Shown: positions 1,701 to 51,950 of the stretch, piece after piece | Layout: each line of letters opens with the position of its first letter | Numbering within the stretch: the stretch's first letter is position 1 | Assembly: GCA_965240325.2 (NCBI GenBank) | Contig: OZ251245.1 | Coordinates: 930,001-994,000, forward strand | DNA: 64,000 nt | Direction: 5' to 3' | Source of the DNA: Rebecca billardiae RCC1528 | Lineage: Eukaryota; Protista; Haptophyta | Translations under genes and position numbers: made by a program | Notes under the pieces: model-generated | The model's database searches: none | Seen by the model: the letters and a program-made list of their open reading frames with translations, nothing else | What the model was told of the DNA's origin: nothing

Positions 1701-2664
1701 GCGCGCGCAGGCGATACCGATGCTTCCAGTGGGCAAGGGGGCGATCGTGTGGACGCGGCAAGATGTCTGTGCCTACGAGCCTCTCGTGGCGCCCACGATA
1801 CATCCGTTTGGCAGACCGTCGAGCAGCAGTGTGATCGCAGCAGGTGCTTTGCGTTTGCTCGGTGACGACGCAGTACGACCGCCAATCTGAGCTCAAGCAC
1901 TGCTGTGGTCGACGAGCTGCGCGGCGAAGCGTGCGCGCGAGCCACGCGTGTGCTTGCATTGGCCTGTGACTCAACGACTTCGAGCGGGTGGCTTGGAACG
2001 CGCTTTCTGTATCCGCTGCGGCCACGCGCAGGTCGGCGCATCGCTTCGGGGCGCGAGGAGCTGTGATCTCGACAAACAAGCGAGCTGCCTGCCCACTGCA
2101 CGCCCGCGCTCGCGCCAACGGCTGCTGCCGCTCACCAGCCCGGCCAGTTGGCAGTTCGGGCGGTAATACCAGCCACTTGCCGCGCGTGGCCCATCATCGG
2201 CCGCCGCCCGTCTCATCAGCACCGCGCGGCCGCTCCGGTGCCGCGCCCCGGTGCCGGGCCGGTGCCGCGCGGCCCGGATACGTCAGCAGCGCCGGCTCGT
2301 CCGATGACTCACCGCTCGACGCCGACTGTAGGGGGTCCATGACAGCAGCCCACTGAATTGTGATTTTCGACAACCATGCGATTTAGGTGTCTGACGAGCG
2401 TGGCGCTTGCGGAGGCACCCACAAATATGTCCTGGAACCCAGCCCAGCCGTCAGAAGCACCCAAAACCGACTCCGCGCGTCGTTGCGCGGTCGTGCGCGC
2501 ACGCCAGCTGCGCCACTGTGTCACATACAGATTCAGCCAAACGTCAACGACTTGTTATGGCGGCTAAATGACGGTATGTCGTCGGACTTACTTATTCATA
2601 ACCGTTGCAACCCGCCCCAACAAAATTAAGGTGGACTTGCTAAATTTTAGTAGGCACGATGAGT

Positions 2665-4383
2665 TAGGGGGGCCAAACCGCCCATTTAAAAATGAAAAGC
2701 AAAGTCGCGTCGCATTTTCGCTCCGCCCTCGGCCTTTTAGGGTGGCGCGGAGCCTTTTTCTCGGACCCCGCTCGAAAATCGAGCTTCACGCCTTCGGACG
2801 CTCAGAGCTCGGTTCCGCTCCAGCGCGAGCGGCCGGAGGCAGTGGACCGCCGCGCGCTCGCGACCTTTGAGACGCCGAGATGGTCTCGGGTGCGCGCGCG
2901 CGTGACGCTGGTGGGCGCTACTGACCCGTGCCTTTGCGCCACCAGCGGCTCACCACCCGCTTCTTGGCCATCTCGCGCCGTGCGCGGCGCGCGTCGGCCG
3001 GCTTGAATTGGCGCGCTGCGTGCGCCCGTCACGCTACCGCACGGTGTGGCTCATGATCAACTCGCACAGTTGAGATCGATGCTCGCACCAAGTGCCCATG
3101 TATGTATGTGGATGCCCAGCTCGCCTAACCTGCCCTGCTGCGCCGGAATCGCCGTCAGCAGACCGGCGCGAGCTCGCGCGCAACACCTCCGCGGAGCTCG
3201 CAACTGTCATGTTCCGCTTGTAGGGCCCGTGTTTGCACCTGCCGTGGCACTTGCGATGGTCAGTACGTTGGGTATGGGTCACGTGTGCCCTCTGATGGCG
3301 TCTGGGCGCCTCCCGTTCGCCTCTCAGGACGTCGCGGACGTGCTCGCAGGCAGCGGTTGGCTCATTCGACAGGTCCGACGTGCACTCGACCGTGCCTGCA
3401 AGCGCGCCCCTGTGACGCTCATGCCTGCAGAAGCAGATGCAGATGGGCCCTCATGCACCCTGGTGCGCCCAAGACCGGCGGGAGCGTCAGAGACCGTCTC
3501 AATCTTGACACCTTGCACACGCCGGCGCTTGCCGTTGGGCTCCGCGCAGCCAGCCAGGAGCGCCGAACAGCGCCGGATCAGCCTCTGTAGGCCGAATATC
3601 CGCCCCTAAGCCCAGAAATAGCGCGGAACAGGGTAGTGCGTACCTATATGGACCAATCCCATCCAGCCTGGTTTGGTGCAGACACGCCAGCCACCGCCTG
3701 GAGCAGACGTTTGCTGCCGAATCGCATGCTCGGCACTGTGCCGCACTGCGACGACGACAGATTTGACCTGCCTCGTAGGTCTCGGCCAGGGAGCGGTGAC
3801 GGTTGGCTCGAGTCACTTTAAACCTTGACTATGACCGAGAGCACTCCCGGGCTAAGGACGTGGGGCCGGTGCTTTGGGTCTACTATGTCTGCAATACGCC
3901 GTACGCGTGGCCGTATACACAGTCTGAAAACGTATCTCGCAGCTCGAGATCAGACGAGGCTGTATTCATCAGCATGGCGGCTATATACACAGTGGGTATG
4001 TAACGATCGGTGGCTTCTAGTAAACTACATATTTGACAGCCTGCCAGTACACAGCCTATATCGCATGTTGGGACCTGCTGCTGCTGGGGACTCACTGGAA
4101 CGATCTCGCTGAGATGCTCTATCAAAGTGAGGTCGACATGGTCTATATGTCACATATAGGACGACCGTTACATACCGTTTCCAATACGTTCAGGCTCATT
4201 CTAATAAGTAAATATGCTAGCCGTTACGCCCTATATTCAGGGTATGTGCACCTGATTTTTTTACATGGCCGGCCCAGACCCCTCCAGAGGGCAAATGATC
4301 CAGCCCGAAATCAGCTCTAAACACTCGCTAGGACCCGAGCTCGTGGCCGTCAGTAACGCTACAGTGCCACTTTGGCCCCCCTA
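2665..4383. mobile_element. non-autonomous TIR element with 7-bp TSD, nested in 2329-6453
   Basis: TIR TAGGGGGGCCAAA / TTTGGCCCCCCTA; TSD GATGAGT at 2658-2664 and 4384-4390; removing it restores colinearity with the related copy at ~50050-50160. Confidence 0.88.
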
Positions 4384-4880
4384 GATGAGTGCGCGTAGAG
4401 GGCGAGGAAACTAACTACTCCAAGATCGAGCATGTTACCCATTTAATTAGAGACATGTACCCGTATATATGCACTTACCCACCCGTTTATTATACAATGC
4501 GGGTGGGTTTTAAATATATATTCAGGGTGGTGTCAATATGGGGGTACCTTGTTCACTATTCGTGCTGGGTCATCCGAATAGGCCGCGCCGCCGCGCGGAG
4601 TGACGGCGGGCTCATGCCACCGTCAAACCGTCCCGCAGCAGGCCCGGACGGACCTGATGCGGGCGGCGGGCTGCGTGCCGAAGCACACTACCAAGCGCAC
4701 CTCTGAGCATGCCACCATCCCCATAGTCGTGAAGGAGTCCTCCGCCATCGACGCTTGCGTGCGCAGACTAGCAGTCATCGCCGCCGCCGAGCTTGCCGCG
4801 GCCGTTCGGCGACTTCCGTGCCCGTGCTCTGTGTCACCGGCGTCGTCGCCGTTCGTCGTACCCCAGCCCACGCGAGGCCG

Positions 4881-6200
4881 TCACCGGTCCACCGGTACTG
4901 CGGCGGACTGCGCGCGCTTCGCCGCGCGCTCGCCCTCGAGCTCCGCCGCTCTCCTCTCGCGCTCGAACTGGACGCAGTCGGCAGCCATGGCAGCCCGCTC
5001 GGCCGCAGCGCGATCTGTGCCCCCGCGCGCGCTGCGCTCGGTTGCGTCGGCGCGCAAGCTGGCGCGCGCAGCGTCGGCGACGGCGCGCGCGGTCGCCTTG
5101 CGCGACGAGTCCAGCTCCACCTGCTGCTCCGTCAGGCGCACCTGCTGCTCCAAGATGACCGCGTGCTCAGCAGGAGTCACGCGCTGCTCGTGCAGCAGCA
5201 CCTGCACGCGGCCTGCTGCGGACGCGCGCGGCGCGCCGGCGTCGGGGGGCGAGTAGAGGTCGCGGAAGGGGCAGCTGTCGTCGCCGGCGCCCAGCGACGT
5301 GTCGTCGGCATCCAGCTCCGCCTTCCTCTCCGCCGCCGACGCGCCCTGCTTCCGGCTCAGGATGCGCTCCATGTCCTTGTTCTTGCCCTTCCACCACCTG
5401 TGCACGGTCATCAGCCAGATGCCGATCACCTCCAGCAGCGGCGAGTCGTGGCGCGCCGAGATGCCGAGCGCATCCGCGCAGACGAGCGCGAGCGCATTGG
5501 GCTTCTTCGTCCCACCGTCGCGCGCGGTCTGGGCGCACGCCGGGGTGAACACTCTGACCAACGGCTTGTGCTTCTTCAAGTTCTCGAGCATGAGGTCCAT
5601 GAGCGTGCGGAGGAGGTCGAGGAGCATGAAGTTGAGCACCGATGCGTACCGCGGGCGAGTGCCGGCCACGAACCGACCGGTCAAGGGCTGCAGCACGTGG
5701 ATGGCGCGCGCCGCCACCGCCGTCTCCTCGAGCTGCTGCGCGCTGACGTTGACGTCAGGCCGTAGCTCGGGCCTGCACGGTTGCACACAGCCGAGGCCGT
5801 CCGCGGAGGAGGCGAGCCCCTCGGCGGTGCCGGCGGGGACCTCGGGCGGGTCGCACACATCCATGGGCACGCGTGCATCATCATCTGCCGCGCCCTGGAC
5901 CTCGTCATGCCCGGCACAGCGGTCCGCAAGTTGGTCGGCGGTAGCTGGCCCTTGCGGCAGAGGCGTCGCGGGCACGTCCGAGGGCGAGAAGGCAGCGTCG
6001 GGTGGGGAAGGAGACAGCGTCGAGTCGTTGCCGATGCCTATCCCACCGCGTTGCGCATGTTCGTCTCCGCGTTGCTCGCCTGCACGTGCTCCTAGGACGC
6101 GCTCCTTGGTCGCGGGCAGCACACGTTGAGCACGCATATTCAAATCATGAAGCACGAGCGTCGACCGGCCAGCGACTCCCAGCGAGAGCCCGGTCCACAC
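4881..6200 (-). CDS. transposon-borne hypothetical protein with C-terminal coiled coil (possible transposase or accessory remnant)
   Basis: 439-aa ORF inside element 2329-6453; natural-looking globular core (RYASVLNFMLLDLLRTLMDLMLENLKK...VHRWWKGKNKDME); start codon uncertain. Confidence 0.45.
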   Translation of the reverse strand: MWTGLSLGVAGRSTLVLHDLNMRAQRVLPATKERVLGARAGEQRGDEHAQRGGIGIGNDSTLSPSPPDAAFSPSDVPATPLPQGPATADQLADRCAGHDEVQGAADDDARVPMDVCDPPEVPAGTAEGLASSADGLGCVQPCRPELRPDVNVSAQQLEETAVAARAIHVLQPLTGRFVAGTRPRYASVLNFMLLDLLRTLMDLMLENLKKHKPLVRVFTPACAQTARDGGTKKPNALALVCADALGISARHDSPLLEVIGIWLMTVHRWWKGKNKDMERILSRKQGASAAERKAELDADDTSLGAGDDSCPFRDLYSPPDAGAPRASAAGRVQVLLHEQRVTPAEHAVILEQQVRLTEQQVELDSSRKATARAVADAARASLRADATERSARGGTDRAAAERAAMAADCVQFERERRAAELEGERAAKRAQSAAVPVDR

Positions 6201-7099
6201 GAAGCATGGCTACCTGTTCGCAGCCGCCCAGCCGCTCGGCGAGGCGCCTGCGCCGAGGTGGGCGCGCCCAACGGCGAGCGGACGGCCGTCGACGAGGGCC
6301 ATCAGCCTCGCCGACCCCGTTCAGAGCTCCGCTCCCGCGCCGGGGCCAGCCGAGCGCGGATTTGGAATCTGCCGATCGCGAAAACACGCCGAACAAGTTC
6401 TGAAAATGAAAAGAAAAGAAATCAAAAATCAATTTAATCTGATGGACCCCCTACCGACTGACAGTCGATCATCACTCTACTGCTGGCGCTAGTCTCCGAT
6501 CAGCAGTCGTCGTCCATCCGCGCTATATCTCATCATCACCGCCCGGCCGCCGCGGCCGATTCACTCATCGTCTGCTGTCGTCCGCGGCGCGTCACGACTA
6601 TATACTGCTGCGATCGGAGACGCGCGCGGATGATTCATCGAGTCATCGAGTGATCGACGAGTTCGACGACGGCGACCGTCAGACATCCCGGGAGCGCGCG
6701 CGCGGCGCGCAGCCCGATATATGCGCGGATATCACCGGCGGCCGGCGGCGAGGCCGGCGGCGGGGCCGCCGCTCGGCCGCGCCACGCGCCCGCGCCGTAT
6801 ATCGTCAGAGTCGTACGACGCGACATATGAGCCCCCAGCACGGCGCGCCGGCCTCGACGACCGTATGTGATGGGCTGCTCCGATTGTCTGTTCCACGTCC
6901 AGCTGCGCGACTCGTATGATGCGCGCCGGTCGCGGCCCACCCGAACGGCCGCGATGACGCTCCGGGCCGTCCGAGCCGTCAGACTCCGAGAGTATAGTCG
7001 GTGGCACGGCATCCGCCTGCCGGCGCGCGCGGTATACCCAAATCAGTCTGCCCGGTGCGACTGCTGCTCCCTCTGCGGCAGTCGCCTGGATCGATCATC

Positions 7100-7660
7100 G
7101 GGGCCGCCGCGCGCCGCCGCCCACGCTGCGCGGCGTGCAGCTGCACTCGCCGCCGCGCGCCGGGCTCAGCGCCACGCGTCAGCGTTCGCCGCCGATGCCC
7201 ACGCTGCGTGACGCGCACCTCGCACGGCTGTGGCGGCGCGGGCCGAGCCGCGCACGCGCACGCTCGCAGCCACCGCCCACGCTCTGCGGCGTGCAGCACT
7301 CGGCGCCGCCGCGCGCCGGGCTCGGCGCCGCGCGTCAGCATTCGCCGCCCAAAGGCCTTGCACACGCGCCCAACCGATGCCGATGTTTGAAGCCGTCCCT
7401 AGGGCACCCTCCCTCGCCAGCGTCCCATCCCGGCCACGAGCTAGCGTGCCACCGAGCAGCGTCGCAGCCGCGCGGCGCGCGGCTCGGCTGCCCGCCCGGC
7501 CCGGGCGCTGCTGCGAGCTCGCACGCCCATCGCCGCGGGCTCGAGCGGAGCCCTCCGGCACCGAGGCCTTGCATACACGCCCAGACGATGCCGATGCTTG
7601 CAACCATTTCTCTGACGCACTCGCCGGCGGCCGATCGCGGCCGTGAGCCAGCGTGCCACC
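7100..7660. repeat. degenerate GC-rich direct repeats in the subterminal region of element 766-8099
   Basis: GGCGTGCAG..CGCCGCGCGCCGGGCTC and GGCCTTGCA..CACGC..CGATGCCGATG each occur twice. Confidence 0.6.
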
Positions 7661-8099
7661 GGCACGCTTGACGAGTGGGTCACGGCCATCGACAAGCACC
7701 GGTGCCCACTGTTCGGCACGCCGACATCCGTAGACCCAGATGCACTCCAGAAGAGCGACGCTCGGGGCGTCACGATAGACACATACACCACTGGGACTGA
7801 TCCCCACCCATCTAGCTCCATCCTGCGCTTGCTAAGCCCTCGGAAGTGGTTGCACGCGCCTTGCGTGCAACATGTCGACCGCGAGTCGCGATCGCGCCTT
7901 GCGCACGGCGCCCAAGGACGGCTAAGACGGCGACGAAGTGGGTCTGGGCGAGCTTCCTCCGCCTGCCGGGACCCGTGCGCCTTGCCCCCGCGCACGAGCG
8001 CCGGCCGGCGACCGCTCACGTGGCCGTCAGAATTTTTCCGCGGCGGTCGCCGTGCGTGCACGGGTTATCCGCAATCGCCATCGTTCCGGTGCCACTGTG

Positions 8100-8125
<26 letters not shown>
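8100..8125. repeat. (TA)n microsatellite separating two elements
   Basis: Direct reading. Confidence 0.95.
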
Positions 8126-8130
<5 letters not shown>

Positions 8131-8719
8131 GTGTTATTGGTACAATAACTGAGTGTGTACGAGCTGCATGACGGATGGGCTCGCTGTGAGGCCTCTGCAC
8201 TCCACTTACCTGTTTCGTCGCAGCCGCCCTCGCAGAATTTCAGGACTCTTCTGCGGGTACGCCGCGGGTGCACGAGCAAAGTGCCCTGCCAGAGCGGCGG
8301 ACGAACCAGCCATGCTGCTGCCCCCGGGCATTCGGCAAGTCATCGGCGCGAGCACCGCCTCGCTTCTCGATGAGCAGCGAGCTGGGAATCGGCAGCGCAC
8401 AACCTGAGCGCGCCAGATACCTCTCGCCTCGTCCTTCGACCACAGGATGCCCACCATCAACTCGTCTCAGCAAGTCGTCCCTCGGCTGAGCACGTGCACC
8501 ACGCAGCAGCGCAGCAGCAAACGACCAGCAGCTGCTTTGTTTGGGAGACGCCCGACGCGGACCTCCTCCCGGCCGGTGGGCGCCAGCTTAGCCTACTCCA
8601 CGTCGGCGTGCACGCTCACCGCTCTGCACAGGCTCGACCATGCAGAGACGACCTCACGACACTGGGCACGACCAGAGCAAATGGGATAACTGTGCCTTAT
8701 GTGTGAGTGCAAGCTCGCA

Positions 8720-9780: not shown

Positions 9781-9782
9781 GG

Positions 9783-11127: not shown

Positions 11128-11134
11128 ACAACCC

Positions 11135-16127: not shown

Positions 16128-16631
16128 GGGGGCGAACGGTTACGACGTCCTTCCCTCACGCCCCCACTACTGTCACGCCTTATTATTAACCAAGTGTGCA
16201 CGTTAACCCCCACCGGACTTGATGCCCGATGTAGCACACATGTCTGACATGACCCCCTCTGCCTCCATAGCTGCACGAGTGAAATACAGGCGCCTCGCTG
16301 CCAGGGCCAGTGGCCCAGACCCCTGCCCAGCTACTGGGCTCGATGACAGTCCCCTCAGCTCCCTTCCCCGCGCAGGGATCGGCTAGTGGCTGGCCCTCTG
16401 CCCACACTGGGGCACCCTAGGGGGTGCCCCTGCTGCCGACTCGGCTCAAACTCGATGATCTTGAATTGCAAGGCCGTACACTGCTTGTACCTGGGACCAC
16501 CCCACAGTGTTGGGCTCGTATGCTGTTGGCAATGGCATACCCCCGCCCCCTCTGGAGGCGGGCTGTCCACAGTGGAGTGGTGTCAAGACACTAGGTGTCT
16601 CGGTCAGTGGTTTGAGGTTGGGTGAGGGTGG

Positions 16632-18606
16632 TAGGTGGGTCCCTGGCCATTTTCCAGCGGTCTTTTAAACATTTACCGGGTTTTATGGCCGGAGTTGTGT
16701 GACCTTGAATTCGGATTTCTTTTCGCGCGGGGCGCGGCTCGGGAAAATCGCCGGGCCGCCGGCCGGGGTCCCGATCTGAACGCTCCCGACGATGTCGGAG
16801 CGCCTCTCCAGCGCGACCGAGCCGCCGTGTGTCGGGTAGACTACTGCCAACACCTATCGCGCGCTCCAGCGCTTTGCGCGTGCTCACGAATGGGATCCGT
16901 GGTCACACATCCCCCGCCTGGCACGGGCCGGCATGTTTGACTCTCGCCCGGCTAGACGCGTACAGACAACTTGAATCGATCGGCAGGTGTTCGACCCGTG
17001 CCTTCGAGCAGGGTCACTTTTCGCTACAAGCGGGTCAGGCGACGGGAGGCATGGGTCACCATCAGGCATGTGCATACTCTTGACGCTCCCGCCATCTTGA
17101 GCAGCTCTACGCACCGTGAAGGTGACAATTGGGCTGCGCGCAAGCTGCTCGTGAGAACGCACGACAGCCAGCCCCGGGCTCTCGGGGAGCCATGTGAGCG
17201 ATTGGCGACTTCCGAGAGGGCGTGTTTGGTGGGGGTTGGTACCAATAATCGACCAGCAGGCCTAGGATGGGTGCACTGAGGACTTGGGATGCTAAGAAGC
17301 CGCCGCGATGTGCATCGAGCACGCTGACTTGCCATCCGTGTGCACGATCAAGCGCCAGGAAGATCAGCAGGGCCTTTGACAGCGGCAGCAGGCGCTCAGC
17401 GATCCTTCCCTATGCCGAGTGTGGGCATAATATGCGGTGCTCGAGCGTGGTCGCAGGATATGGGTCCATTCTTGACAGAACTCGGTCGCGTTGACAGGCG
17501 CGGGTGCCACCCCACGCTGTTGCTCCTGCCATCGGGTGGTCCCACTCGTTCCGCTTGTTATCTGCGAAGACTCGTACTCAGCAAATCTACGGCTAGGCGT
17601 GGTAGACCCCTCAGACGCATGTCTGATGATTGCCCGGCACGTTCTCGTCGTCACGTTGGGAGTACTTGAGCGAGCGGAAGCCGCAACGTGATGGCTAGGC
17701 CAGCAGCTCAACCATCTGACGTCTCGCCGGCCAACTGGCTGAGTGCTCTCAGCCTAGCAGCAGCGTCGGTGAACCTATCGTATTGCTGCCTGGCAAGAAG
17801 ATTGTAGGAGGTATCGTCCACGGCATGGGCTGCAGCTGCGGTAGTCGTGGACTGGTGGCGGCCTCACGCGGGTGGGCATACGACGACCGGTGACACGCTG
17901 AGTACGAGCACGGAAGCCGCCGAGCGCGGCAAGCTCCGGCGGTGGCGTTGGCTGATAGTCCAGCCTCGACGGCGGAGGGCTCCCGTGTGACGACGGTGGC
18001 ATGCTCGGTGGCGGGCGATGATGCGTGCCTCGGCACGCAGCCCGCCACAAACACTGCCACTCGCAGGCAGTCCCGTTGCGGCCCGGTTTGCCTGTGTCCG
18101 CGTCGCTCGGCGCCTATTCGATGACCCAACAAACGTACCCACATATCGGAACGAATTTGAATATATAGTGAGCCACATCCATGGTCAATATAAAGTGGGT
18201 AACCGTCGTTATATATACGGGTAATTGGCTATATACAAAGTGGGTAATCTGCTCGATCTTGCTGTAGTTTGTTGGAGGTATCCGCGCACAGCATAGAGCC
18301 CCACTCTTTGCTTCATAAAATGGTTCGGTCGGGTGTCAACGGTTGCCAATAAGTCATTCCGATCGCATGTCGCCATCTAGCCACCATAACCATCAAGTAA
18401 CGCTTCGCAAAATCTCTATGTGACACTAGCGGCGCGGCGCGCGCGCGCTCGGCCGCGCGACGGCACGCGGAGTAGGATTTGAGGTCGAAACTTTTGCTCC
18501 GCCCCGATGGGACGCATTTATAGCGTCGATTCTGGGTGAGAGACGAAATCTAGGACGCCATTCTGAGTGCGCCAGAATATCGCCCCAGTTGGGAGGGACC
18601 CACCTA
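16632..18606. mobile_element. degenerate TIR element with 7-bp TSD, same family as 2329-6453, opposite orientation
   Basis: TIR TAGGTGGGTCCCT / AGGGACCCACCTA; TSD AGGGTGG at 16625-16631 and 18607-18613; 17840-18050 is homologous to the reverse complement of 4660-4900. Confidence 0.85.
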
Positions 18607-18857
18607 AGGGTGGTGGTTGGTTGGGGGCTGGCCAGGGTAGGGCTGGAGGCTTCGGCCGCCAGCCTGATCACCCGGAGCCCGTTATAAAGGGGAATTTAAA
18701 AAAAAAAGCACGGCCGGCCCCACCTGACCGGCACGACTGACAGACACAGTCTCACAGTGTATTACACTGAACCGCGCGCGCACGCGAGTACTACAGCTAG
18801 TACAGTACTGACACTGACAGTTCATCGCACGCCCTCCGTGTGCGCTCGTCGCGCTCT

Positions 18858-23000: not shown

Positions 23001-24298
23001 CCACCGCGGCCCCGCGGCCCGCGCGCCGGCTGCGCTCCAAAAAATCGGAGGTGAAGTTCCGGCGCCGGACGCCACTAGAGTCGGCGACCCTGACCACCCT
23101 TGGCCCTGGTCCCTCTCCTGTCGGTCGGTGCCCAGATCCGTCCATTACTGTACGCCTTCCCCAACCACACAGTTGGGCTCCACACTTTCCATACTACTAC
23201 ATCCTGTCGGCGCGCTGTTGCATCGGCTCCCAGTCGGCGTGTTCCGACGACGACGTTTTGTGGACGACGGTGGGGCGAGGACGACGGGCGCTGGCGCGCC
23301 GCGAGGCGGCCGCAGCCCTCATCCAGGCCTCGCAGGCGGACGGCTGAACGAATCTTCCGACGCGGCGCTACCATACGGCCATCGGCGACGGCTTCATGGG
23401 CGGTGACACTGACAGTTGGCGGGCGTCGATCTCGCCTGCCTGAGCAGTGTGCGTCTCTTATTCTTAGTAAACTGTACTACTCGCCGACCGACTCATGCAG
23501 ATGAAGGGCGACGCCGGCAAGGGCAAGGGCAAGGACAAGAACGCCGAGGGCACCAAACAAAGGTAATATTATGTAGTTGAGCTGACGCGGCCTGGGGCGC
23601 GCATCTCAGCAGATGGCGTCGTCGCCGGGGGGCCAGGGCCGGTGCCGCAGCAGGCGGAACGGTGGCGCGGCAGCTACGAGGTAGCAGTGCGCGGACGCGC
23701 GGCTGCTGCGAGGCAGCAGTGCGCGGACAGCGCGCGCGCGCGCGGCGCGCGCGCAGCGGCTGGAGCAAGTCGGGGGCGAGCACGCGTGAGACGCGGGGCG
23801 ACGCACCGACACCGAGCGCACGCATTCATTGCGGAACGGCGCGCGTGCGGGCGGCACGGCCCGGCGCGGCGCGGTCAGCGTGACGCGAGGCGTCGTCACT
23901 GCTGGTACGCTGCTTTGGTCCGATGGACGACACCGGGTGCGCAGGCACCGGACATTGGGCAAGCAGGTACAAATAACTTGAGCGACGAACGGGCGGACGG
24001 TGCGGACGCTGATTGGATGATCAGCGGCCGCCGATCTGGGTAAGTCTGCGCTGGGGTGATACTACCGCCCCGAATACGAAGAACGATCGGCGAGATCGGC
24101 GAGCGGCTCGATCAGCGGCTTCAGGCCAAGCAAGACGCGGGCCGGGTCACAGCATCACCTAAGAGCGAAGTTGCATCGGAGGCAATGTGATTGTGAGCCC
24201 GTGGAGGCGACGTCCGTCCTGTCGCGCGCGGTGAGCTTTTAGCAGGGCTCGGTAGCGCTCGGAGCTCGCGGTAATCCCAAGCTAGATATTATATATAT

Positions 24299-27551: not shown

Positions 27552-28270
27552 CCAAGGGCCGTAAGGGCACCCAACTCCCAGTGCGGAGGTTGGGGCGCCT
27601 CTGTTGTGCTCGCCTCCGTGAGTGCCCGCGGTGAGTGGCCCGTCGCCGAAGACGCGGGAGGCGAGGGTGCGGGCATGACGGGGCGCCGCGGCGGGCGGCG
27701 CGCGGCGGGCGGCGCGCGGCGGGCGAGGCGGACAGTGCTGATGGCGAGGCGGAGGTGGAGGCGGAGGTGGGGGCGAGCCGAGCGCAGCTCGGCTGAGGCC
27801 ACCGGACGCGCGACGAGTCGAGCAGCCGACCGCCGGGAACGGAAGTGAGTCAGGCGGACATGGAGGCTGCCCGTAGGGGCCTGCAAGCCAAAGTGCGGGC
27901 GGGCGCCCACGCTTGCCCCTGCGTGCCCGGTGCAAGCAGCCCGAGCGCTCCGTTTGCTGCTGGCGCGCACGGCACGAGTGAGCTCGCGCGCCGCGTTGGC
28001 AACTGCCGATTGCACGGGCCGAGAGGCGAAAGAGGCGAGCCTGGCGGACTCACGCGCGTGTCAGGAGAGCCTTGACCCGCGCCGCTCAGCGGCGAGCCGT
28101 CCGGGTTCGGCATCGCCGCCAGTCATCCAGGCAGAGCGCTCGACGTCGCGCCCTCGCGCAGCGTTTGAAGCACGCCGGCCGGACGCGAGTCGCGAGGCCA
28201 CGAGACAGACAGAGGCACCTCAACCTCCGAGCTGGCCGCACTGGGAGTTGGGTGCCCTTACGGCCCTTGG
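27552..28270. repeat. inverted repeat, arms 27552-27604 and 28209-28270 (possible MITE or foldback)
   Basis: 35-bp perfect IR CCAAGGGCCGTAAGGGCACCCAACTCCCAGTGCGG plus imperfect extension. Confidence 0.75.
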
Positions 28271-31380: not shown

Positions 31381-32732
31381 TTCTATGATTTAAAAAGACA
31401 CAGGCACGAGGGCGCAGCTCTCCTGATTCGTCTGTCGAAGTAATGATTGGAGACAGAGGGTGTGAGCGCGTTGGCCGCCGGGTGAGGACCTAGTCGTCGC
31501 CGATGCCGGATCACACGGAGGCAGTAGGTGCCCAGGGATGCCGCTGAAGTATTTGCAGTCGTCGCCAGCCCTTGGTCATCATGTACAGGCAATCGCGGGC
31601 AATAAGGAGCTGTCACGTTAAGAAACTGGGGCTTGCTATCTGCGGATCTGGCCTAGAAACTGAGGCTAGCGATTGGCTGGTTCGCTATACGCATAGTCAC
31701 ACTAAGAACCGGGACTACGTCGTCCCGGCTGACGAGTGGTCCGCCGCCGGGGCGAGGCGCAGTCGGCCCGTCGGGGACGCGGCGCGCGGCCCGACTACGA
31801 GTACAGGCCAAGTCCCGACTTCTCCTGATGACTCACTCCTGGCCAGTGCACCGCAGCATCCATGCAACATCATGCCAGATTTGCTCCAAAAAGGCCCAAA
31901 ATTTTCGTCGGCCTCGCCGGCCGGGCCTAAAAACTCAGCGGGGGGCTCTGCCCCCCTGCGCCCCCCGCGCCTGCGCGGCGGGCGGACCTAGCTAAGAAAC
32001 TGAGACTCCGTAGGCGCTCGGGCTACCGAACGGCTAAGAAACCGAGGCTAGCCGTGAGATCTCTGACTTCTTATTGCCCGCGATTGCCTGTACGCGTCGA
32101 CGTTCCGCAAGGCCGTGTTCGAGTTGCGGATGCAGTGGTGCAGATAGTGGATGGGGTCGCCCTGGACTGTGCCTGAGCTGTGTGCGTCTCTTAACGTGCA
32201 CACTTGGTTAAGGCGTGATTGACGCCATCCACACTGCACAAAGACACCGCCACAAAACAGACCGGCGCAGGCAGGTGAGGGGCGCGTTGCCGCACCTCAT
32301 CGAGGCGGCCATCGCAGCAAGCGGCCGCCCCGCGCTCGGAGGCACGCGCTCGAGAGCGCGCTCTGACACCACACGGGGAGGGTGCTGCACCTGGATGTTG
32401 TATCCCAGCCACCTCGAGAGTGCAGCCACGCCAAACACCTGCCTGCGCTGTGAGCGACGCCGCGTCGACTGATCGAGCCCCAGCCGAAGGGAAGAACTGG
32501 AAGATGAAGGGTGGGCAGGTCCAGATGCCCGGCGTAAACTGCGCGCTGCTCGCCCGCGGAGGCACACCAGGGGCGAAAGGGAGGGGGTGCTGGGCGGGGG
32601 TGCTGGCAGATTCAGCAGCCCGCCAGCGACCGCCACCCATGGGCCAGTCCACCCATGCGCTTTCATCGCGCGCGACACCAGCTGCGTTTATAGCTGTGTC
32701 GCCCCTGCTAATAGGAATACATTCAATATACA
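31381..32732. mobile_element. composite insertion flanked by the 14-bp direct repeat ATACAGTTTACTAA
   Basis: Repeat at 31367-31380 and 32733-32746; contains a homologue of 20661-20941 interrupted by a MITE. Confidence 0.55.
31586..32090 (+). mobile_element. 505-bp MITE, TA TSD (Tc1/mariner-type)
   Basis: 21-bp TIR CAGGCAATCGCGGGCAATAAG, TA on both sides; three copies in window. Confidence 0.93.
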
Positions 32733-34413: not shown

Positions 34414-34937
34414 CAGGCAATCGCGGGCAATAAGGAGCTGTCACGTTAAGAAACTGGGGCTTGCTATCTGCGGATCTGGCCTAGAAACTGAGACTAGCGA
34501 TTGGCTGGTTCGCTATACGCATAGGCACACTAAGAAACCGGGACTACGTCGTCCCGGCTGACGACTACGAGTCGGGTCCGCCGAGGGCCTGGCCGAGGGC
34601 GAGGCGCAGTCGGCCAGTCGGCGACGCGGCGCGCGGCCCGACTACGAGTACAGGCCAAGTCCCGACTTCTCCTGATGACTCACTCCTGGCCAGTGCACCG
34701 CAGCATCCATGCAACATCATGCCAGATTTGCTCCAAAAAGGCCCAAAAATTTCGTCGGCCTCGCCGGCCGGGCCTAAAGACTCAGCGGGTGGCTCTGCCC
34801 CCCTGCGCCCCCCGCGCCTGCGCGGCGGGCGGACCTAGCTAAGAAACTGAGACTCCGTAGGCGCTCGGGCTACCGAACGGCTAAGAAACCGAGGCTAGCC
34901 GCGAGATCTCTGACTTCTTATTGCCCGCGATTGCCTG
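34414..34937 (+). mobile_element. MITE copy 2 (524 bp, slightly diverged)
   Basis: Same TIR and TA flanks. Confidence 0.93.
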
Positions 34938-41082: not shown

Positions 41083-41534
41083 CGCATCCGACCACCTCCC
41101 AATAGGTTCAGACTCTATTTTACTATGTAATTACCCGTCCCTTACTCAGATTTCAGCACAGCCCGGGAGCGTTCCGGACACCGTTACGTATGTATACATA
41201 TAATAATATATGCGAAAAGGGTACCCGGACTGGGTATTTAGTTGATAGAAAACAGAGTCTGGACCTATTGTAATACAGTAGGTCCAGGTATTTAGTTGAT
41301 AGAAAACAGAGTCTGGACCTATTGTAATACAATAGGTCCAGACCTATTGTATTACAATAGGTCCAGACTCTGTTTTCTATCAACTAAATACCCAGTCCGG
41401 GTACCCTTTTCGCATATATGTATACATACGTAACGGTGTCCGGAACGCTCCCGGACTGTGCTGAAATCTGAGTAAGGGACGGGTAATTACATAGTAAAAT
41501 AGAGTCTGAACCTATTGGGAGGTGGTCGGATGCG
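41083..41534. mobile_element. ~450-bp AT-rich near-perfect palindrome (foldback or MITE-like)
   Basis: CGCATCCGACCACCTCCCAATAGG... mirrored by ...CCTATTGGGAGGTGGTCGGATGCG; internal duplication near the centre. Confidence 0.85.
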
Positions 41535-43519: not shown

Positions 43520-43797
43520 CGGTGACGCGGACACGCGGTCGCGCTTGACGCGTTTGTGCTCGGTGGAACGGCGCCGACCGTATGGATACGTCTGGAACCG
43601 CAACTGCTTATTCGCATCGTACCCGCATGATTGCTACGGGTAGCGCTTCCGCCAATAGTGCTACCACTATCTACTACTGCGAATACTCGTACGAGCAATA
43701 CTGTACCAGACACACGGATCTATACCCCCATATAAGTCGCCCCCAGATCGGCAGCCATCGTGCCGATTTGATCAAGTGAGCCATCCCCGCCGCCGGG

Positions 43798-44310: not shown

Positions 44311-45619
44311 TCGGCACGGCATCTTCGCGAAGTTGCAACGTGTTCGCAGACACTCGGAATCGACTCTGTCGTCGACTGCGGCTCGGATCTGATTCTGGAA
44401 GGTCAGAATGTCAATATTATATTATATTATATGTCGTTATACTGCTCGGTTCGCACGGTACAGACCGTATATATAGCAGCCGATTGTCGCCTATACATAT
44501 ATATAGCTATATATATACTGCTACGTCACTTGACAGCATCAGTATTATTATATTTAGTCGTTATAAATAAGCAGCTCTGCATTAATTTAGTCCGGCTAGT
44601 CCGCGACGGTCGTCGGGTCTCTGCTGGCGGTGAATTCATCAGGTGAAAGCTAGCCACTCATAGAGTCGGGCGCCCCTCAACGCCTCAAACAATAACGGAC
44701 AGTCACTAGTCAGTGACGCGACAACGGTCCGCCGGACTCAAACCGAAGCGTCACTAGAGTTCGCTGCAGTCGTCGTCGACGAGCAGCCCGCGGAGCCCTG
44801 GCTCCGCGTCACGGGCCGGCTGCCGGCAGCCCGGCTGACTTTATTTAATGGTGATAGTGTGATCCGAGCCGCTGGTCGGGGCCGTCGGGCCGACGGTCGG
44901 GCCTCGGGGACGGGGTCCGGGTCGGCGGCACCGCACGTCACGACGGGCGGCACGTCAGCTGACTGCCGTGTCGGGCCGGCTGCCACCGAGCCCGGTCGTG
45001 GCCCGTCTCGTGGAACCGCGAACGTGAATGAAAGGCGGAGAAAAGCTGTCCGCCAGGGCCACTCTGCAAGCTGCTGCATGAAGTCTGATAGTGATCGGCC
45101 CGATCATCGGATAGCTAGTCATGATAATGGGCGCAAAGTCCGCCTTCGCTGCTAATGATCCGGTGAACTATTCGAATAAGTGGCTAACGTCAGACGCCGT
45201 TACGAGTGAGCCCGTCCTCATCTTGATCTTGTTATTGTGCGGCGTGCAAGCTGAAGCGCGTGCGTGCGCTGCGGCGAAGTGCGAGACTCTGAGTAGTCTG
45301 AGTGCGAGACTGAAAGATGAAGTACTACATCACTGTCGTTACCATCAGTCGTATACAAGTAGCCCGTCCGAAGTGTGCCGCCACACATGAGTCATGACAC
45401 AAACTCAATATTTAAATAAGTTATTTCAAGGTAGTTAGCAAGAGTGGAGCCGTTCCGCACCGCGTGAGGCCCGCCGCACCGTTCCTGAATCCACCAACCA
45501 CCAAGACCAACCCGACGGTCACCATCTTATGCTGGGCCGGCTGGCGCCTCATACACCAGGCGCGCTGGACAAGGCGCCTTTGGCACGGCCCCTGTCGGTA
45601 CACGCGCCGCACACCCACC

Positions 45620-46411
45620 TCAGGTGGCACCGCTGAGCGCCGCCGAGATCGCGCTGAGATCAGCGTGCTCGAGGCCGTACCAGACTACCAGCCCGATGGA
45701 GCTGAGCGCGAGGACAATCTTGGCGACCTCCCGCGCGGGGATGTCGAGCGCGCGCAGTAGCCCGACGAGGAAGATAAACACCGTGACCGCGCCGCCGAAC
45801 GGCGCGATGGCCATCACGACGCCCGCTCTGTCCCCGCTCAGCATGCCATCATCCATGAAGTCGCTGACGACGGGTGCGGCCTGCTCGGTGAAGACGACTG
45901 CTTGCTGGTTGACCACCTTCGCGCCCTCGGAGACGGCCTCGCCGAGCTGGCCGCGCGCTGGCTCGCTCGCGTCCCACGCCGCGACAGCCGTTGAGCCCGT
46001 CGTGACGGCTACCTTACCGAGGAACGAGCCTGCTGCGTCTGCCGTCTCCTTCTGCTCCTCGGACATGAAGAGGCGGACGATCGCGCCGACCGTCCACAGC
46101 GCGGCGCAGAAGAGGCCCCAGAGCAGCTGGATGATCTGACCGCCCACGGGGATAGCGTTCTCGCGGACGACCTCGACGGTGCCCGCGACGATGGGCGCGG
46201 CCGTGCGCACGCCGGCCTCAACGTACGGCTTGGCCGTGTCGATGGCCCGCTCGACCTCGGGCACCACCGCCTGCACGCTGTCGGCGAGCGAGCCCACGTC
46301 GGTGGCGAGGACGAAGCTGCGGACAGCGAAACGTGGGGCCGCGCGCAATAGCGGCGGCCCACGCCCTGGTTGAAGCGCCGCGACGAGCGCGCAGGCTGCC
46401 AGGAGCAGCAT
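45620..46411 (-). CDS. hypothetical membrane protein, probably plastid-targeted
   Basis: MLLLAACALVAALQP signal plus Arg/Pro-rich transit-like region; three hydrophobic segments. Confidence 0.75.
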   Translation of the reverse strand: MLLLAACALVAALQPGRGPPLLRAAPRFAVRSFVLATDVGSLADSVQAVVPEVERAIDTAKPYVEAGVRTAAPIVAGTVEVVRENAIPVGGQIIQLLWGLFCAALWTVGAIVRLFMSEEQKETADAAGSFLGKVAVTTGSTAVAAWDASEPARGQLGEAVSEGAKVVNQQAVVFTEQAAPVVSDFMDDGMLSGDRAGVVMAIAPFGGAVTVFIFLVGLLRALDIPAREVAKIVLALSSIGLVVWYGLEHADLSAISAALSGAT

Positions 46412-46618
46412 CGCGCGAATGCCCGCCGCCCGACCGAGAGCCCGGTCACCGCGTTCAGGTTGCCCGAGACGAAATCGGGCTCGCAAAGTTGAAAGTAGGA
46501 CCAACGGTAAGTAATTTGCGAGGAGTCCGGCGCAAGCTCTCCACAGTCTCCAGTCTCCACTGTTCTCCGACCGGAAGGGGGTGATTGAACCCCCTTGCTC
46601 CGACGAGTCGGAGCAACG

Positions 46619-47047
46619 ATGGCGGGCGTGATGTCACACGAATTGTACGCGGCGCGAACGGTGGCAACGCAGCCTTGCGCGCGAGCCTGCGCTGACGAGT
46701 CGGCGCGCCGCGTATGACCGCACATACACTACGCCCACAGGACGCTGCGCATACCCCTCGAGAGCGACCTCATCGCCGCCGCCGTCTACGACGCGCTCGT
46801 CGTGGACGAGGAGCTGCAGCCGGAGAAGGTGAGCAAGGTGCTGCGCCTGAGACAAGGCGCTGTGCTCGAGGTGCACTTCGCGTCGGCGGAATGGCGGCTC
46901 ATGCGCGTCGTTGTCGGCTCATTCGTTGAGTACCTCGCAGTTGCCATCCGCTGTGCGAACGCCATGCCGCCACCAAGCGCATTGCTTACCGCCGAGCCCC
47001 CGCTCCCGCCAAACGCCGGGCGTCCATCCGGGGCGTCGTCGACGTGA
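46619..47047 (+). CDS. PCC1: KEOPS/EKC complex subunit Pcc1 (LAGE3 family); exons 46619-46644 and 46741-47047
   Basis: Splicing the GT..AG intron 46645-46740 gives MAGVMSHELTLRIPLESDLIAAAVYDALVVDEELQPEKVSKVL..LEVHFASAEWRLMRVVVGSFVEYL, the Pcc1 pattern. Confidence 0.82.
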
Positions 47048-47414
47048 TCTGATGCAGCTAAGCGCGCATCTGGCAGCGGCTGTGGTATCATCGTTCGCGA
47101 ACAAATGCCCGCCAGTTGTCGGAGGAGATCTACTTGCAGCCAGGGGGACGACGCCGGCGTGGACGTGGTGGCGGACATCACTGACGACCTGCGCGCCAAG
47201 TCGCCGACGGCGACAGCTGCGGCGACGTGAAGGGGGATGAGAGCCGGCTGCTGAGCCGGGAGACTGTCACCGCCAGCTATACGTAGTCGTTGCGTATCAT
47301 TCTATACTGATGCTGTCAGACCATGCACGATGCGGTGCGCGCGAGCTGCTGTCGTCAGCCGTGCTGATGGCCTGATCATGATGCTCGAGGGCTCTAGGCA
47401 TCTCTCTGGCCGTG

Positions 47415-48938
47415 TCAGTCTCCGGCTGGCGGCCCGCACGCTGCTGATGGCGCTGCAGCATGATCGTGGTTGGTGATCGCCACGCGCGCAGCGCCGCCCA
47501 GCTTGAGCGAGCCCGTGACGAGCACGCGGCGCGCCGGACGCTGCTCTGCGGCGATCGCGAGCGCGCGCGCGACCGCGTCCTCGGCGTCGTCGACAATCTC
47601 ACACGTGTGCCACCCCTGCGCGCGCGCGAGCTTGAGGAGCTCGTCCGGGCACACGGAGGGCACGTCGGCGGATGCGGGCAGCCGCGTGGCGACGAGCACG
47701 CCGCCGCTGTCGCCGCGCGCATGCTCGAGCGCGCGCACGATGCCGGCGGCGTCCTTGTCCGCGGCCACGCCGAGCACGACCACCGCGCCTCCGCTCGGCG
47801 CGGCGGGCTCGCCGCCGTCGCGCAGGCAGGCCCCGCCCCCCGCGCCCTCCGAGCCGCGCGTCGCCTCGGCCGCGCGAGGCGGCTCGGCGCCGAGCGCGCG
47901 CGCGGCGTGCGCGACACTCTCCGGCACGTGCGCGCCGTCAAGCAGCACGCGCACGCCGTCGTGCGTGCGCACGCGCTCCATGCGCGCAGGGAGGAGCGTG
48001 GCCGCCGCCGCTCGCTCGGCGTGCGCCAGGCCCGACGCGTCGAGCGCGCCGCGCTCCGCGCGCGCGTCGGCCGGCCCCGCCAGCCCCCGCTGCTCGCCCC
48101 GCCGCGGCGGCAGCAGCCCGCGGCGTCGCAGCTCGGCCAGTGCCGCGCTGCTTAGCGCCGCGGTCGCCGCCTCGACCGCATCCGCCGACGCGCCCTGCGC
48201 GTGCTCGGGCGGCAGCGCGAAGAGGACGCGGTCGGCGCCGCGCCTGCGCGCCTCGTCGAGCGCCGCGACGCCGGCCTCGTCCGTGCGCGCCCAGCCCGGC
48301 GGCATGCCCACGACAAGGCTGGCGCCCGGACTCACGATCCCCGCCTTCTCGCGCGCGATCTCGGCGCGGCTCGCGCCCAGCTGCGCCGTGTGCTCGAGCA
48401 GCACGTTCGTGAGCACGCACACGGGCGCGCGCAGCACGTTGGTCGAGTCGCGCGCGCCCCCGAGCCCGCACTCCACGACGGCGAGGTCGACGCGCGCCTC
48501 GGCGAACGCGCAGAACGCGGCGGCGGTCAGGACGTCGAACCAACTCGCAAACGCGGCCGGGCAGCTCGGCTGCGCTCGAGCCAGCTCGTCGCGCGCGTCC
48601 ATCGAGGCGTGCAGCGCGGAGGCGAGCGCATCGTCCCCAATCGGCTCAGCGTCGACACTCACGCGCTCGTTCAGCCGGTGCACGTGCGGCGAGGTGTACA
48701 GCCCGACGCGCGCGCACTCGCGCCGCGCGAGCAGCGCCGTCCGCACGGCGACGCTGCCCTTCCCCTTCGACCCGGCGACGTGCACCGCGGCGAAGCGCGT
48801 GTGCGGGTCGTCGAGGTGCGCGAGGATCTGCGCGATTGGCGCGGTGGAGACGCTCCATCCGGCCGGCCGGGCGCCGCGCTCACGGTTGGTCAGCGCGGCC
48901 ATGCGCGCCAGCGCCGCCGTCAGGCGCGAGCCCGCCAT
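47415..48938 (-). CDS. folC: folylpolyglutamate synthase / dihydrofolate synthase
   Basis: HVAGSKGKGS P-loop, YTSPH, ECGLGGARDSTN, EKAGI, LPARME, LDGAH, VTGS. Confidence 0.93.
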   Translation of the reverse strand: MAGSRLTAALARMAALTNRERGARPAGWSVSTAPIAQILAHLDDPHTRFAAVHVAGSKGKGSVAVRTALLARRECARVGLYTSPHVHRLNERVSVDAEPIGDDALASALHASMDARDELARAQPSCPAAFASWFDVLTAAAFCAFAEARVDLAVVECGLGGARDSTNVLRAPVCVLTNVLLEHTAQLGASRAEIAREKAGIVSPGASLVVGMPPGWARTDEAGVAALDEARRRGADRVLFALPPEHAQGASADAVEAATAALSSAALAELRRRGLLPPRRGEQRGLAGPADARAERGALDASGLAHAERAAAATLLPARMERVRTHDGVRVLLDGAHVPESVAHAARALGAEPPRAAEATRGSEGAGGGACLRDGGEPAAPSGGAVVVLGVAADKDAAGIVRALEHARGDSGGVLVATRLPASADVPSVCPDELLKLARAQGWHTCEIVDDAEDAVARALAIAAEQRPARRVLVTGSLKLGGAARVAITNHDHAAAPSAACGPPAGD

Positions 48939-49239
48939 CGTTCGTGATCGGTCTCGGTCGGATCCGACCGCCTACAGTAGTAGATCCGGGGGCTAAACTG
49001 TGGGGTCGTATGTGCCGCCAAGGGCGGTCCTTGGTATCGCAGTCTACTTCATCTTGATGATTCTTGATCAGTCGTACTATCCATAGTACCGGGTAGTAGT
49101 ACACTGTCATTCATCAGCAGTACGGGCACTGGTCAGGCCGACAGCGGACAGGCTGCGGCCCCGCGAGCAGCACTCCCAGCAGGCAGTTACAGTAGCCATT
49201 AGGCACTGAGCGTCTCAAAGCTGTAAAAGCAGCAACCTA

Positions 49240-49744
49240 CAGGCAATCGCGGGCAATAAGAAGTCAGAGATCTCACGGCTAGCCTCGGTTTCTTAGCCGT
49301 TCGGTAGCCCGAGCGCCTACGGAGTCTCAGTTTCTTAGCTAGGTCCGCCCGCCGCGCAGGCGCGGGGGGCGCAGGGGGGCAGAGCCCCCCGCTGAGTTTT
49401 TAGGCCCGGCCGGCGAGGCCGACGAAAATTTTGGGCCTTTTTGGAGCAAATCTGGCATGATGTTGCATGGATGCTGCGGTGCACTGGCCAGGAGTGAGTC
49501 ATCAGGAGAAGTCGGGACTTGGCCTGTACTCGTAGTCGGGCCGCGCGCCGCGTCCCCGACGGGCCGACTGCGCCTCGCCCCGGCGGCGGACCACTCGTCA
49601 GCCGGGACGACGTAGTCCCGGTTCTTAGTGTGACTATGCGTATAGCGAACCAGCCAATCGCTAGCCTCAGTTTCTAGGCCAGATCCGCAGATAGCAAGCC
49701 CCAGTTTCTTAACGTGACAGCTCCTTATTGCCCGCGATTGCCTG
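49240..49744 (-). mobile_element. MITE copy 3 (505 bp, apparently identical to copy 1, inverted)
   Basis: Same TIR and TA flanks; internal ORF translation identical to copy 1. Confidence 0.93.
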
Positions 49745-49776
49745 TACAGCATCCGTATCTATCGGCACTTACGTCA

Positions 49777-51565
49777 TAGGGGGTCCAGGCCCTCAGCCTA
49801 GCGGTTGGGGGTATTCGACAGGCCTGCCATGTAGGTGTCTGTCGAGGCTGTCGCCTGTTGAAGTGCCCTCTAGTATGCCCCCCAGCCCAGCCCAGCCGTC
49901 AGAAGCACTCAAAACCGACTCCGCGTGCCGTCGCGCCGTCGTGCGGGCGCGCTGCCGGCCACTTTGTGTCACATAGAGATTCAGCGAAGTGGTACCCACC
50001 CGTGATGGCGGCTAGATGACGGAATGCGGTCGGTAGTACTTATTGACAACCGTTGCCACTCAGTCGAATGAATTTATGATGCAGCGACTGAATATTTGGC
50101 GCACCATGCTGGGCGCGTAGAAATTCAGGAGAAACAGCAGCAAGATCGAGCATGTTACCCATTTAAATACAGATAGATACCCGTAAATATGAGCATGTGT
50201 GTACCCGTACATACTAACGGTCGATGCGAGTCCATATGTATTCAAATCAATGTCTATATATGTGGGTACGTTCGAATACGGGCGCCGGAGATGAATATGC
50301 GGGCTCGGTCGCAACACTGGCGACTCAGCCGGCACCGGCGCCGCGTCGCCAGTCGTCCTACCCCAGCCCATGAGCCCATGCGAGGCCACCACCGGTCTAC
50401 GATTACCGCGGCTGCAGCGGCCAGCCACCGAGGCGGCCTCCGGCTCGGCGAGCTGCTCGGCGGCGAGCTTCGCGCTCTCTGACTCTGCTGCCACGCCCGC
50501 CGTGCTCACCGCCTTGACCATAGTGCGGTCCGCGCGCTGCTCCGCTGTGATCGCCGCCAGATCCTCACGCCGCGCCTTGGCCTCGGATGTGCCTGCGCGG
50601 CTGTTGGCGGCCGTGATGGCGCCGGCGGGCTCGGCGTCGCGCGCCTGCTCCGCGGTGAGCGTGACGTCCGTGCGCGTTCTTTGCTTCGCACATCCGTGCT
50701 GCAGCCCCACTATCCAGGCGTGCGCCTCGGCCGTGCACAGAGAACAGGCAGGGCCAAGGAAGCGGCCACTCGAGGCGGAACGCGAGAGATTCAAACCAGT
50801 AGTGCACCACCTTCTTGTTCAACAGGCCATCCTTGCCGAGCTGGGTCCATCCTGAGCGCCGTGGCGTTCTCGTGTGCCTTGAGTTGTTGCTAGAGCGCGC
50901 GGACATCGCCCAGCGAGAGGAGGTTGATGCGCTCGCGCAGCCGGCACCGGTAAGAAACTAGCGGCAGGCATCATGATGATTACATTCAGCGTATCGGCGT
51001 CGGAGAGAGGCAGCACACGCGACGGCGCGCGCTCGCCAACGCCTGCATGAGTGAATGCGGCAGTGGAAAGCATGCGCGCGGGAGTACCGCGGGGCCATCA
51101 GGGGGGCAGGTACGTGCGCAGGAACGCTACACATGGAAGGAGTATGTGTTGGGGACCGCGTATGCGCACCGTATGCGTGCGCGGCGCGCGCGCATCACCT
51201 GCAAGGGGAGCACCCTCCTCCATCTCGAGCGCATGAGCCAGCTTGAACGCACTGGCACGCGTGCAACCTCGCGGTTTCAATGTCCGACGCCGGCGACCGA
51301 TATGTCCGGGGACTTCATGGTGGTCACGTAGACTCGCTCGATCGGGCGCTCTCGACGCTCGTACGCGCTCTGTCGCGCCGAGGCGACGGTGGTGGTGACC
51401 GTCCAGTCGTGCATCTCCGTCGCCGCCAGCCCACTGAACAGCCCGACCCGGCAGCTCGCCGCGTACGCTCGCGGCGCTCGAATTTATGGCGAAACTCGCG
51501 CTCACTCCACTTGAAAACCCGTCGAGGCATTTTTTCGATTTTATTTTGGTGTGCTGGACCCCCTA
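49777..51565. mobile_element. internally deleted TIR element with 7-bp TSD, family of 2329-6453
   Basis: TIR TAGGGGGTCCAG / CTGGACCCCCTA; TSD TACGTCA at 49770-49776 and 51566-51572; 49880-50190 is homologous to 2440-2660 plus 4390-4470. Confidence 0.88.
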
Positions 51566-51950
51566 TACGTCAACCAGTGGGTGCTGGTAGTGGTGCCAGC
51601 AGTGAGCACTGCCCTAACTCAAACTGGGCAGTCCTCGGTCCGGCAGAACCGAACAGTGACGGACACGGTACTGTGGCTTGGCTGGCTTGGCTTGTTGGCT
51701 GTGTGCGCAAGCCAAGCCTTGCGCATTATCATCGGCATGGAGCTCCGAGTCTGCGGCAACCCTACGCCAGCTAGCTGACGAAGGACGACGCAGCATCATC
51801 CGCTGCGATGGCGTCACACACCATGGGGCCACCGCACGGTTGACCTCGCTGCAACCAAAATGGTGACAGCGACGAGCGCCCGCCGCGCCCGCCCGAGGCC
51901 GCGCGCCACGCGCCAGCAGCCTCGAAGAGCGAGCGGCGACGCGGTCGTCC

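Follow-up and report, generated by a model that had tools for sequence, protein, structure and literature searches.

The subject of this report is a 64,000-nt stretch of DNA from Rebecca billardiae RCC1528, referred to throughout as the window, and the question it raises is what kind of mobile element lies behind four insertions with TAGG termini, named E1 to E4, and which enzyme moves them. The four insertions are very probably non-autonomous cut-and-paste transposons that are mobilized in trans and belong to hATv, the "Shanks-type" branch among hAT-like elements. The enzyme would be a very large transposase (~1,800 aa, two exons) encoded by rare relatives of 6–7 kb elsewhere in the genome, acting on the copies in the window.

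Anatomy of the four insertions

E1–E4 were read in the sequence at coordinates taken from an earlier, sequence-only reading of this DNA (the original prediction), and all of these coordinates were confirmed: each insertion is bounded by terminal inverted repeats (TIRs) of 12–13 bp and flanked by an exact 7-bp target-site duplication (TSD) (Table 1). None of the four carries a working gene, and all are non-autonomous. The internal homology that had been claimed for three of them was also recovered, as subterminal homology common to E1, E4 and E3, with E3 in reverse orientation, while internal comparison places E2 in a separate family. An empty site for E2 is provided by L033, a paralogue of E1 that is 98.7% identical and aligns unbroken over the E2 insertion point; the sister copies of E1, L033 and L034, show 98–99% identity.

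An exact 7-bp TSD is expected by chance with a probability of 4^-7 per element. The terminal 10-mer alone, at one mismatch, is not rare in the window (9 seen, 9.5 expected), and it is therefore the paired TIR and TSD structure that carries the evidence. This lack of enrichment speaks for chance matches or assembly artefacts, an explanation that was rejected: hundreds of full-length copies occupy unique loci and differ in their 7-bp TSDs, control termini give 0–1 matches, and a paralogous empty site exists.

Table 1 Coordinates of the insertions, their flanking duplications and the transposase remnant in the window.
Feature	Position	Strand	Details
E1, composite insertion	2329..6453	+	4,125 bp; TIR TAGGGGGTCCAT, 12/12, at 2329-2340 and 6442-6453
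E1, own body	2329-2664 plus 4391-6453		2,399 bp, non-autonomous; E2 and one TSD copy taken out
E1 TSD	2322..2328 (left), 6454-6460 (right)		CCGACTG
E2, nested in E1	2665..4383	+	1,719 bp, non-autonomous; TIR TAGGGGGGCCAAA, 13/13
E2 TSD	2658..2664 (left), 4384-4390 (right)		GATGAGT
E3	16632..18606	-	1,975 bp, non-autonomous; TIR TAGGTGGGTCCCT, 13/13
E3 TSD	16625..16631 (left), 18607-18613 (right)		AGGGTGG
E4	49777..51565	+	1,789 bp; TIR TAGGGGGTCCAG, 12/12
E4 TSD	49770..49776 (left), 51566-51572 (right)		TACGTCA
Transposase N-terminal coding remnant in E4	50429..50846	-	matches residues 136-351 of the L032 protein; tblastn identity 57-75%, E 5e-24 and 3e-10; blastn match to L032 4958-5602

Copy number and TSD length in the genome

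The genome comprises 72 Mb in 41 contigs, with a GC content of 60–80%; this size and composition agree with a haptophyte host. Counted genome-wide (forward + reverse), the exact terminus TAGGGGGTCCA occurs 120+125 times against 1+1 for its control, the E2-type terminus TAGGGGGGCCAAA 129+123 times against 0+0, and the E3-type terminus TAGGTGGGTCCCT 78+84 times against 0+0. The termini thus stand about 100-fold above control, and the total amounts to ~325 elements with at least three terminus types. Sixteen full-length copies of E4 were found (94–100% identity, three of them at about 100%), together with at least 40 copies each of E2 (97–100% identity) and E3 (94–100%). Identities of up to 100% indicate that the families have moved recently, and the insertions are recently active. 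With many copies 97–100% identical to each other, the lineage is as abundant and diversified as the original prediction supposed.

TSD length was tabulated for 57 copies with both ends read. An exact 7-bp TSD was found in 41/57 copies, a 6-bp TSD in 1/57 and an 8-bp TSD in 0/57. The genome-wide check proposed in the original prediction thus comes out, in these 57 copies, for a constant length of 7 bp, which can be regarded as a fixed character of the group. Target-site preference is weak: 46% of sites have C at position 1 and G at position 7, and the TSD GC content is 53%.

A transposase-bearing copy

The window copies are linked to a transposase gene by L032, a terminus pair on contig C7 that spans 6,241 bp, has the TSD CTACGGC and carries the same TIR. 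Over its first 132 bp L032 shows 86% identity to E1, and its interior aligns with E4. L032 contains two long minus-strand open reading frames (ORFs) of 1,273 and 739 aa, which form two exons around a 176–179-bp GT..AG intron (exon 1, 1,180 aa; exon 2, 629 aa) and together encode a transposase of ~1,800 aa with D, D, C(2)H and E motifs. In the layout we propose, a coiled-coil N-terminus would be followed by a D-D-C(2)H-E catalytic core and by chromo-like and Tudor-like C-terminal modules; a relative of the protein, P0030, has a Chromo match just below the Pfam cut-off.

E4 has kept remnants of residues 136–351 of the L032 protein (Table 1) and is therefore an internal-deletion derivative of the autonomous element, whereas tblastn with the same protein found no transposase remnants in E1, E2 or E3. 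Other transposase loci in the genome lie on C26 (62% identity), C11 (a fragment) and C14 (26–33%). Candidate partners of the E2 and E3 families were located by coordinates as two long terminus pairs, C14:103569-110654 with E2-type ends and C27:1384040-1390340 with E3-type ends, and E2 and E3 would presumably be moved by transposases from such copies.

Junction scars and the proposed cutting chemistry

An exact TSD is missing in 16/57 copies, and in 10 of these 16 the defect takes one form: 1–3 extra bases stand between the last two bases of one TSD copy, beside the TIR, and these added bases are without exception the reverse complement of the neighbouring TSD bases. Two examples are L041, where TCTGAT-CAT-G precedes the TIR (TSD TCTGATG), and L047, where C-TG-ACAGGT follows it (TSD CACAGGT). 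A flank-hairpin model with a nick offset of 1 nt predicts 19/19 inserted bases correctly (4^-19, position given). An offset of 0, with the nick at the exact border, explains 0/16 scars, and offsets of 2 and 3 explain only sequence-ambiguous cases. An eleventh imperfect copy lacks the base beside the TIR, and the remaining five are without explanation (L009, L010, L029, L044 and an E3-type copy nested in L034). Scars fall on one element end in 8/10 cases (CCAAAC for E2, CCAGGC for E4; L036-L061 and L011-L016), a bias that is not significant and that hints at one end being cleaved first or more often.

The nested copy in L034 (G000:C18:34888-39455) occupies positions 2208-4158 of that locus, inside an E1-type copy. 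The empty site in other E1 copies reads …GTCCACCTTAATT…, and the flanks in L034 read …GTCCACCCAC before the element and CACCGCCTTAATT… after it; both flanks are rearranged, in a way that the simple scar model does not explain.

The scars suggest abortive one-ended cleavage followed by rejoining through end joining. In such an event, the top strand would be nicked 1 nt outside the element, and the flank hairpin would then be opened off-centre and rejoined to the same end with a 1-nt flap. The "open-and-shut" joints of V(D)J recombination are a mechanistic analogue, in which a hairpin is opened off-centre and rejoined, leaving P nucleotides. The likeness lies in a hairpinned flank, opened off-centre and rejoined to its own end, with 1–3 palindromic (P) nucleotides at an otherwise intact junction; the difference is that here a transposase would be acting on its own element in a germline genome, and that the scar has the hAT-specific 1-nt offset. 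A nick offset of 1 nt was reportedly described for Hermes by Zhou et al. in 2004. The Hermes flank hairpin itself is documented (PMC4763223, PMC5499845).

From the junction scars, the protein motifs and a borderline structural match presented below, we infer the following chemistry for a completed event. The transposase would bind the TAGG(G/T)GG termini, the non-transferred strand would be nicked one nucleotide outside the element, and a hairpin would be made on the flanking DNA, as by Hermes. The freed 3'-OH ends would then be inserted 7 bp apart in the target, and repair would give the 7-bp TSD. The scars are indirect evidence, at the level of sequence, that excision may begin with a nick placed 1 nt beyond the element and continue by way of a flank hairpin. 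A bolder proposal, which we put forward tentatively and regard as somewhat less than an even bet, is that the one-sided "open-and-shut" scars in about one-fifth of copies are an in-genome record of Hermes-like 1-nt-offset hairpin chemistry in a 7-bp-TSD hATv group, and of frequent abortive single-end cleavage and rejoining in vivo. Weighing against the chemistry outlined above, the pattern was not seen in a related element: in the TSD table published for Shanks of Tisochrysis lutea, which lists only 7 nt per side and includes many copies with degenerate TIRs, 0/14 rows with mismatched TSDs fit. No description of such scars beside resident hAT copies was found in the literature searched, and the junction-scar analysis is, as far as those searches went, the one new point.

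Flank hairpins are not confined to hAT. MULE elements have TSDs of 9–10 bp, Transib of 5 bp and Kolobok of 4 bp, and RAG and Transib nick at the exact border. Membership in one of these superfamilies would account for the hairpin, which they also form (PMC5499845), and for the C(2)H motif, since they share C/D(2)H motifs. Their TSD lengths nevertheless differ from the 7 bp seen here, the exact-border nick of RAG and Transib corresponds to the offset that accounts for no scar, and no chain from these superfamilies ranks near Hermes in the structural scan described below, which together make such an assignment highly improbable.

Relationship of the transposase to hAT

An exhaustive HMMER search of 1.84 billion cluster representatives recovered only 28 relatives of the transposase, all unnamed environmental or transcriptome sequences. 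Four motifs are kept across the aligned relatives (TTDGATK, GFVTDRCAAE, NCMEHALVN and AVERSFSHLK), and most of these relatives have a tryptophan 50 residues past the H of C(2)H. The CXXH motif of Hermes contains H268, and W319 follows 51 residues later (PMC4763223).

The query for structure prediction was the intron-less relative P0003, taken via contig L065 (L065 1250-3997, corresponding to P0003 residues 300-1215), which may be a transcript, judging from its intron-less form and the form of its record name. Two AlphaFold models were obtained, one of a 916-aa core with a predicted local distance difference test score (pLDDT) of 61.5 and one of a 437-aa helical part with a pLDDT of 73.5. In a structural scan of 48,161 chains, the insertion domain of the Hermes transposase was the top match for both models, with Z 6.7 for the core model and Z 8.1 for the helical model (root-mean-square deviation 3.8 over 163 residues); for the helical model, no chain other than Hermes reached Z ≥ 8. 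Hermes residue 265 is paired with the C of C(2)H at the first position of the alignment. Among the nearest neighbours in a protein language model, most are hAT families (DUF659, ZBED-type RNase-like and Dimer_Tnp_hAT), with weak scores of 0.75–0.77. An hhalign comparison of the family profile with L031, the one canonical hAT remnant in the genome, aligns the ER.FS motif, which resembles the hAT C-terminal block.

Several results weigh against the hAT assignment. Pfam searches with both L032 ORFs and the relatives P0003, P0030 and P0005 found nothing in the catalytic part, and the hAT domain PF05699 (IPR008906) had no match in L032, P0003, P0030 or P0005. Searches of PDB sequences with phmmer and with a profile returned coiled-coil noise only, a word-index protein search with residues 590-1190 gave no match, and the hhalign comparison with L031 reached an E value of only 0.23. 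Foldseek found no match in the PDB for either model. By the tool's own note, a Z of 8.1 is borderline where the domain is helical. In the core model, prediction of the RNase H part is poor (pLDDT 30–55). Of the features diagnostic of hAT (a DDE core, CXXH, and a tryptophan within an all-alpha insertion domain), the motifs are conserved, the match to Hermes is borderline and the beta-sheet core is poorly modelled. About 280 residues separate the second D from C(2)H, compared with 17 in Hermes. None of the 57 copies has the 8-bp TSD that is a distinguishing feature of hAT (PMC4763223, PMC10368747).

Within the ~280-residue insertion, a beta-hairpin plus helix module is confidently folded (model residues 250-410, pLDDT about 90).

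These negatives raise the alternative that the elements form a superfamily of their own, unrelated to hAT or similar to it by convergence, so that the hATv label is a convenience. The missing significant link to hAT at the sequence level, the 7-bp TSD, the large insertion between the second D and C(2)H and the small number of relatives all fit this alternative, and a published HHpred attempt on Shanks likewise gave no match (PMC10138859). Against it stand the top rank of Hermes in two models with C(2)H in register, the conserved tryptophan at a spacing like that of Hermes W319 after H268, the ER.FS motif, the YARNG termini and the 1-nt-offset scars, and we consider a separate superfamily unlikely.

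Membership in the P superfamily is highly improbable. It is favoured by TSD length only, which according to the original prediction is 7 bp in some members. No THAP or P-transposase match was found in Pfam, no P-transposase chain appeared among the structural matches, which Hermes heads, and the proteins show no similarity. The termini and the excision chemistry are also unlike: Drosophila P excision leaves 17-nt 3' overhangs and involves no flank hairpin, and would not give palindromic junction insertions.

The hAT assignment is thus preferred, for a group that departs from canonical members in several respects. The TIRs of hAT elements are short and begin with a YARNG consensus, and the termini here, TAGGG and TAGGT in TIRs of 12–13 bp, conform to it. 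With canonical hATs such as Hermes, Ac and the Ace element of T. lutea, the group shares these short YARNG TIRs and, in its conserved motifs, the order D, D, C(2)H, W, E; it also has a predicted all-helical insertion domain, whose best though borderline structural match is Hermes, and indirect evidence for a flank hairpin with 1-nt offset. It differs from them in its 7-bp rather than 8-bp TSD, in the undetectable BED finger and PF05699 domain, and in a protein about three times larger, which has a coiled coil, chromo-like and Tudor-like tails, and an extra module that separates the second D from C(2)H.

Comparison with Shanks

The closest published counterpart is Shanks, a hAT-like element of the haptophyte T. 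lutea (Berthelier et al. 2023, PMC10138859, section 2.4). Its autonomous copy is ~6,768 bp long with a 7-bp TSD and has two ORFs of 793 and 580 aa without Pfam or HHpred match; 80 non-autonomous copies measure 486–3,050 bp, 66 rows of the T. lutea Shanks table have 7-bp TSDs, and transposition between T. lutea strains was observed (PMC10138859). The terminus is given as TAGGGCGGTCAAAC, also cited as TAGGGCGGTC and in a shorter form as TAGGGCGG, and Repbase puts Shanks in hATv, with 16 elements from three haptophytes (PMC10138859).

The R. billardiae elements resemble Shanks in several respects. Both have 7-bp TSDs (exact in 41/57 copies here, with ten more explained by the scars), an autonomous copy of similar length (~6.8 kb for Shanks, 6.2 kb here) with two long Pfam-blank ORFs, and many non-autonomous copies of 0.5–3 kb. 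The window termini are of the hATv/Shanks type TAGGG(C/G)GG(T/C)C, and the E2 terminus TAGGGGGGCCAAAC agrees with TAGGGCGGTCAAAC at 12/14 positions. The perfect TIR is 12–13 bp long here, whereas imperfect TIRs of 26 bp are reported for Shanks. Exact matches to the Shanks terminus hardly occur in this genome (3, compared with 2 for the control), and the families here therefore differ from Shanks itself.

Two claims of the original prediction, hAT affinity and a constant 7-bp TSD, hold up. Its suggestion of a possibly undescribed lineage is not supported: the same kind of element has been published as Shanks and catalogued as hATv, so that the lineage is already known, and only the particular families may be new, set apart from Shanks by terminus and TIR length. 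As a transposon group, hATv is mentioned in no paper found other than PMC10138859. Literature searches on hATw, hATx and hATm and on 7-bp TSDs in algae gave nothing usable, and the 7-bp TSD that the original prediction attributed to hATw was not confirmed.

In two rows of the T. lutea table, Non-A_Shanks_76 and _77 (PMC10138859, supplement S6), 6/7 bases of the listed 3' flank match the 5' flank in reverse complement, reflecting either an inverted rather than direct flank duplication or an orientation slip in the table.

Implications

Taken on its own, the finding is ordinary annotation, namely new non-autonomous families in a catalogued and barely studied transposon group. It gains interest from the association of ~325 young copies with a rare giant transposase that may read chromatin. 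The TSD length of Hermes has been ascribed to how far apart the two active sites of the dimer lie (PMC10368747), and the group is for this reason a natural variant in which to study what sets target spacing. The junction scars, in turn, offer testable evidence, drawn from sequence, on how DNA is cut by an enzyme that is still beyond classification by any profile method.

Other repeats in the window and the genome

Several further repeats were noted in the window. A 717-bp element at 27553-28269, with TIRs of ~34–42 bp starting CAAGGGCCGTAAGGGC and an exact 7-bp TSD GCCAGCC, could be a miniature inverted-repeat transposable element (MITE) that represents one more family with 7-bp TSDs and has another type of terminus. 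An element of ~505–524 bp with termini CAGGCAATCGCGGGCA and TA on both sides, the pattern of a Tc1/mariner-type MITE, is present in three copies (31586-32090, 34414-34937 and 49240-49744), the third of which stops 33 bp short of E4. An exact 12-bp inverted pair TAGTAAACTGTA, at 23465 with 31379 and 32745, may mark another mobile element; the 23465/31379 pair is accompanied by the 5-bp direct repeat ATTCT. A dense nest of inverted repeats at 41100-41520 forms a long palindromic, AT-richer stretch within the part of the window that has the lowest GC content (0.565).

Elsewhere in the genome, L031 (G000:C17:763618-766851; positions 1426-1635 and 2369-3223, both on the minus strand) holds the only PF05699 match, a short remnant broken by a stop. 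Since this sole match is a remnant, canonical 8-bp-TSD hATs seem almost extinct here while hATv thrives. The remnant adjoins an ORF that resembles the RNase H/integrase tail of Copia.

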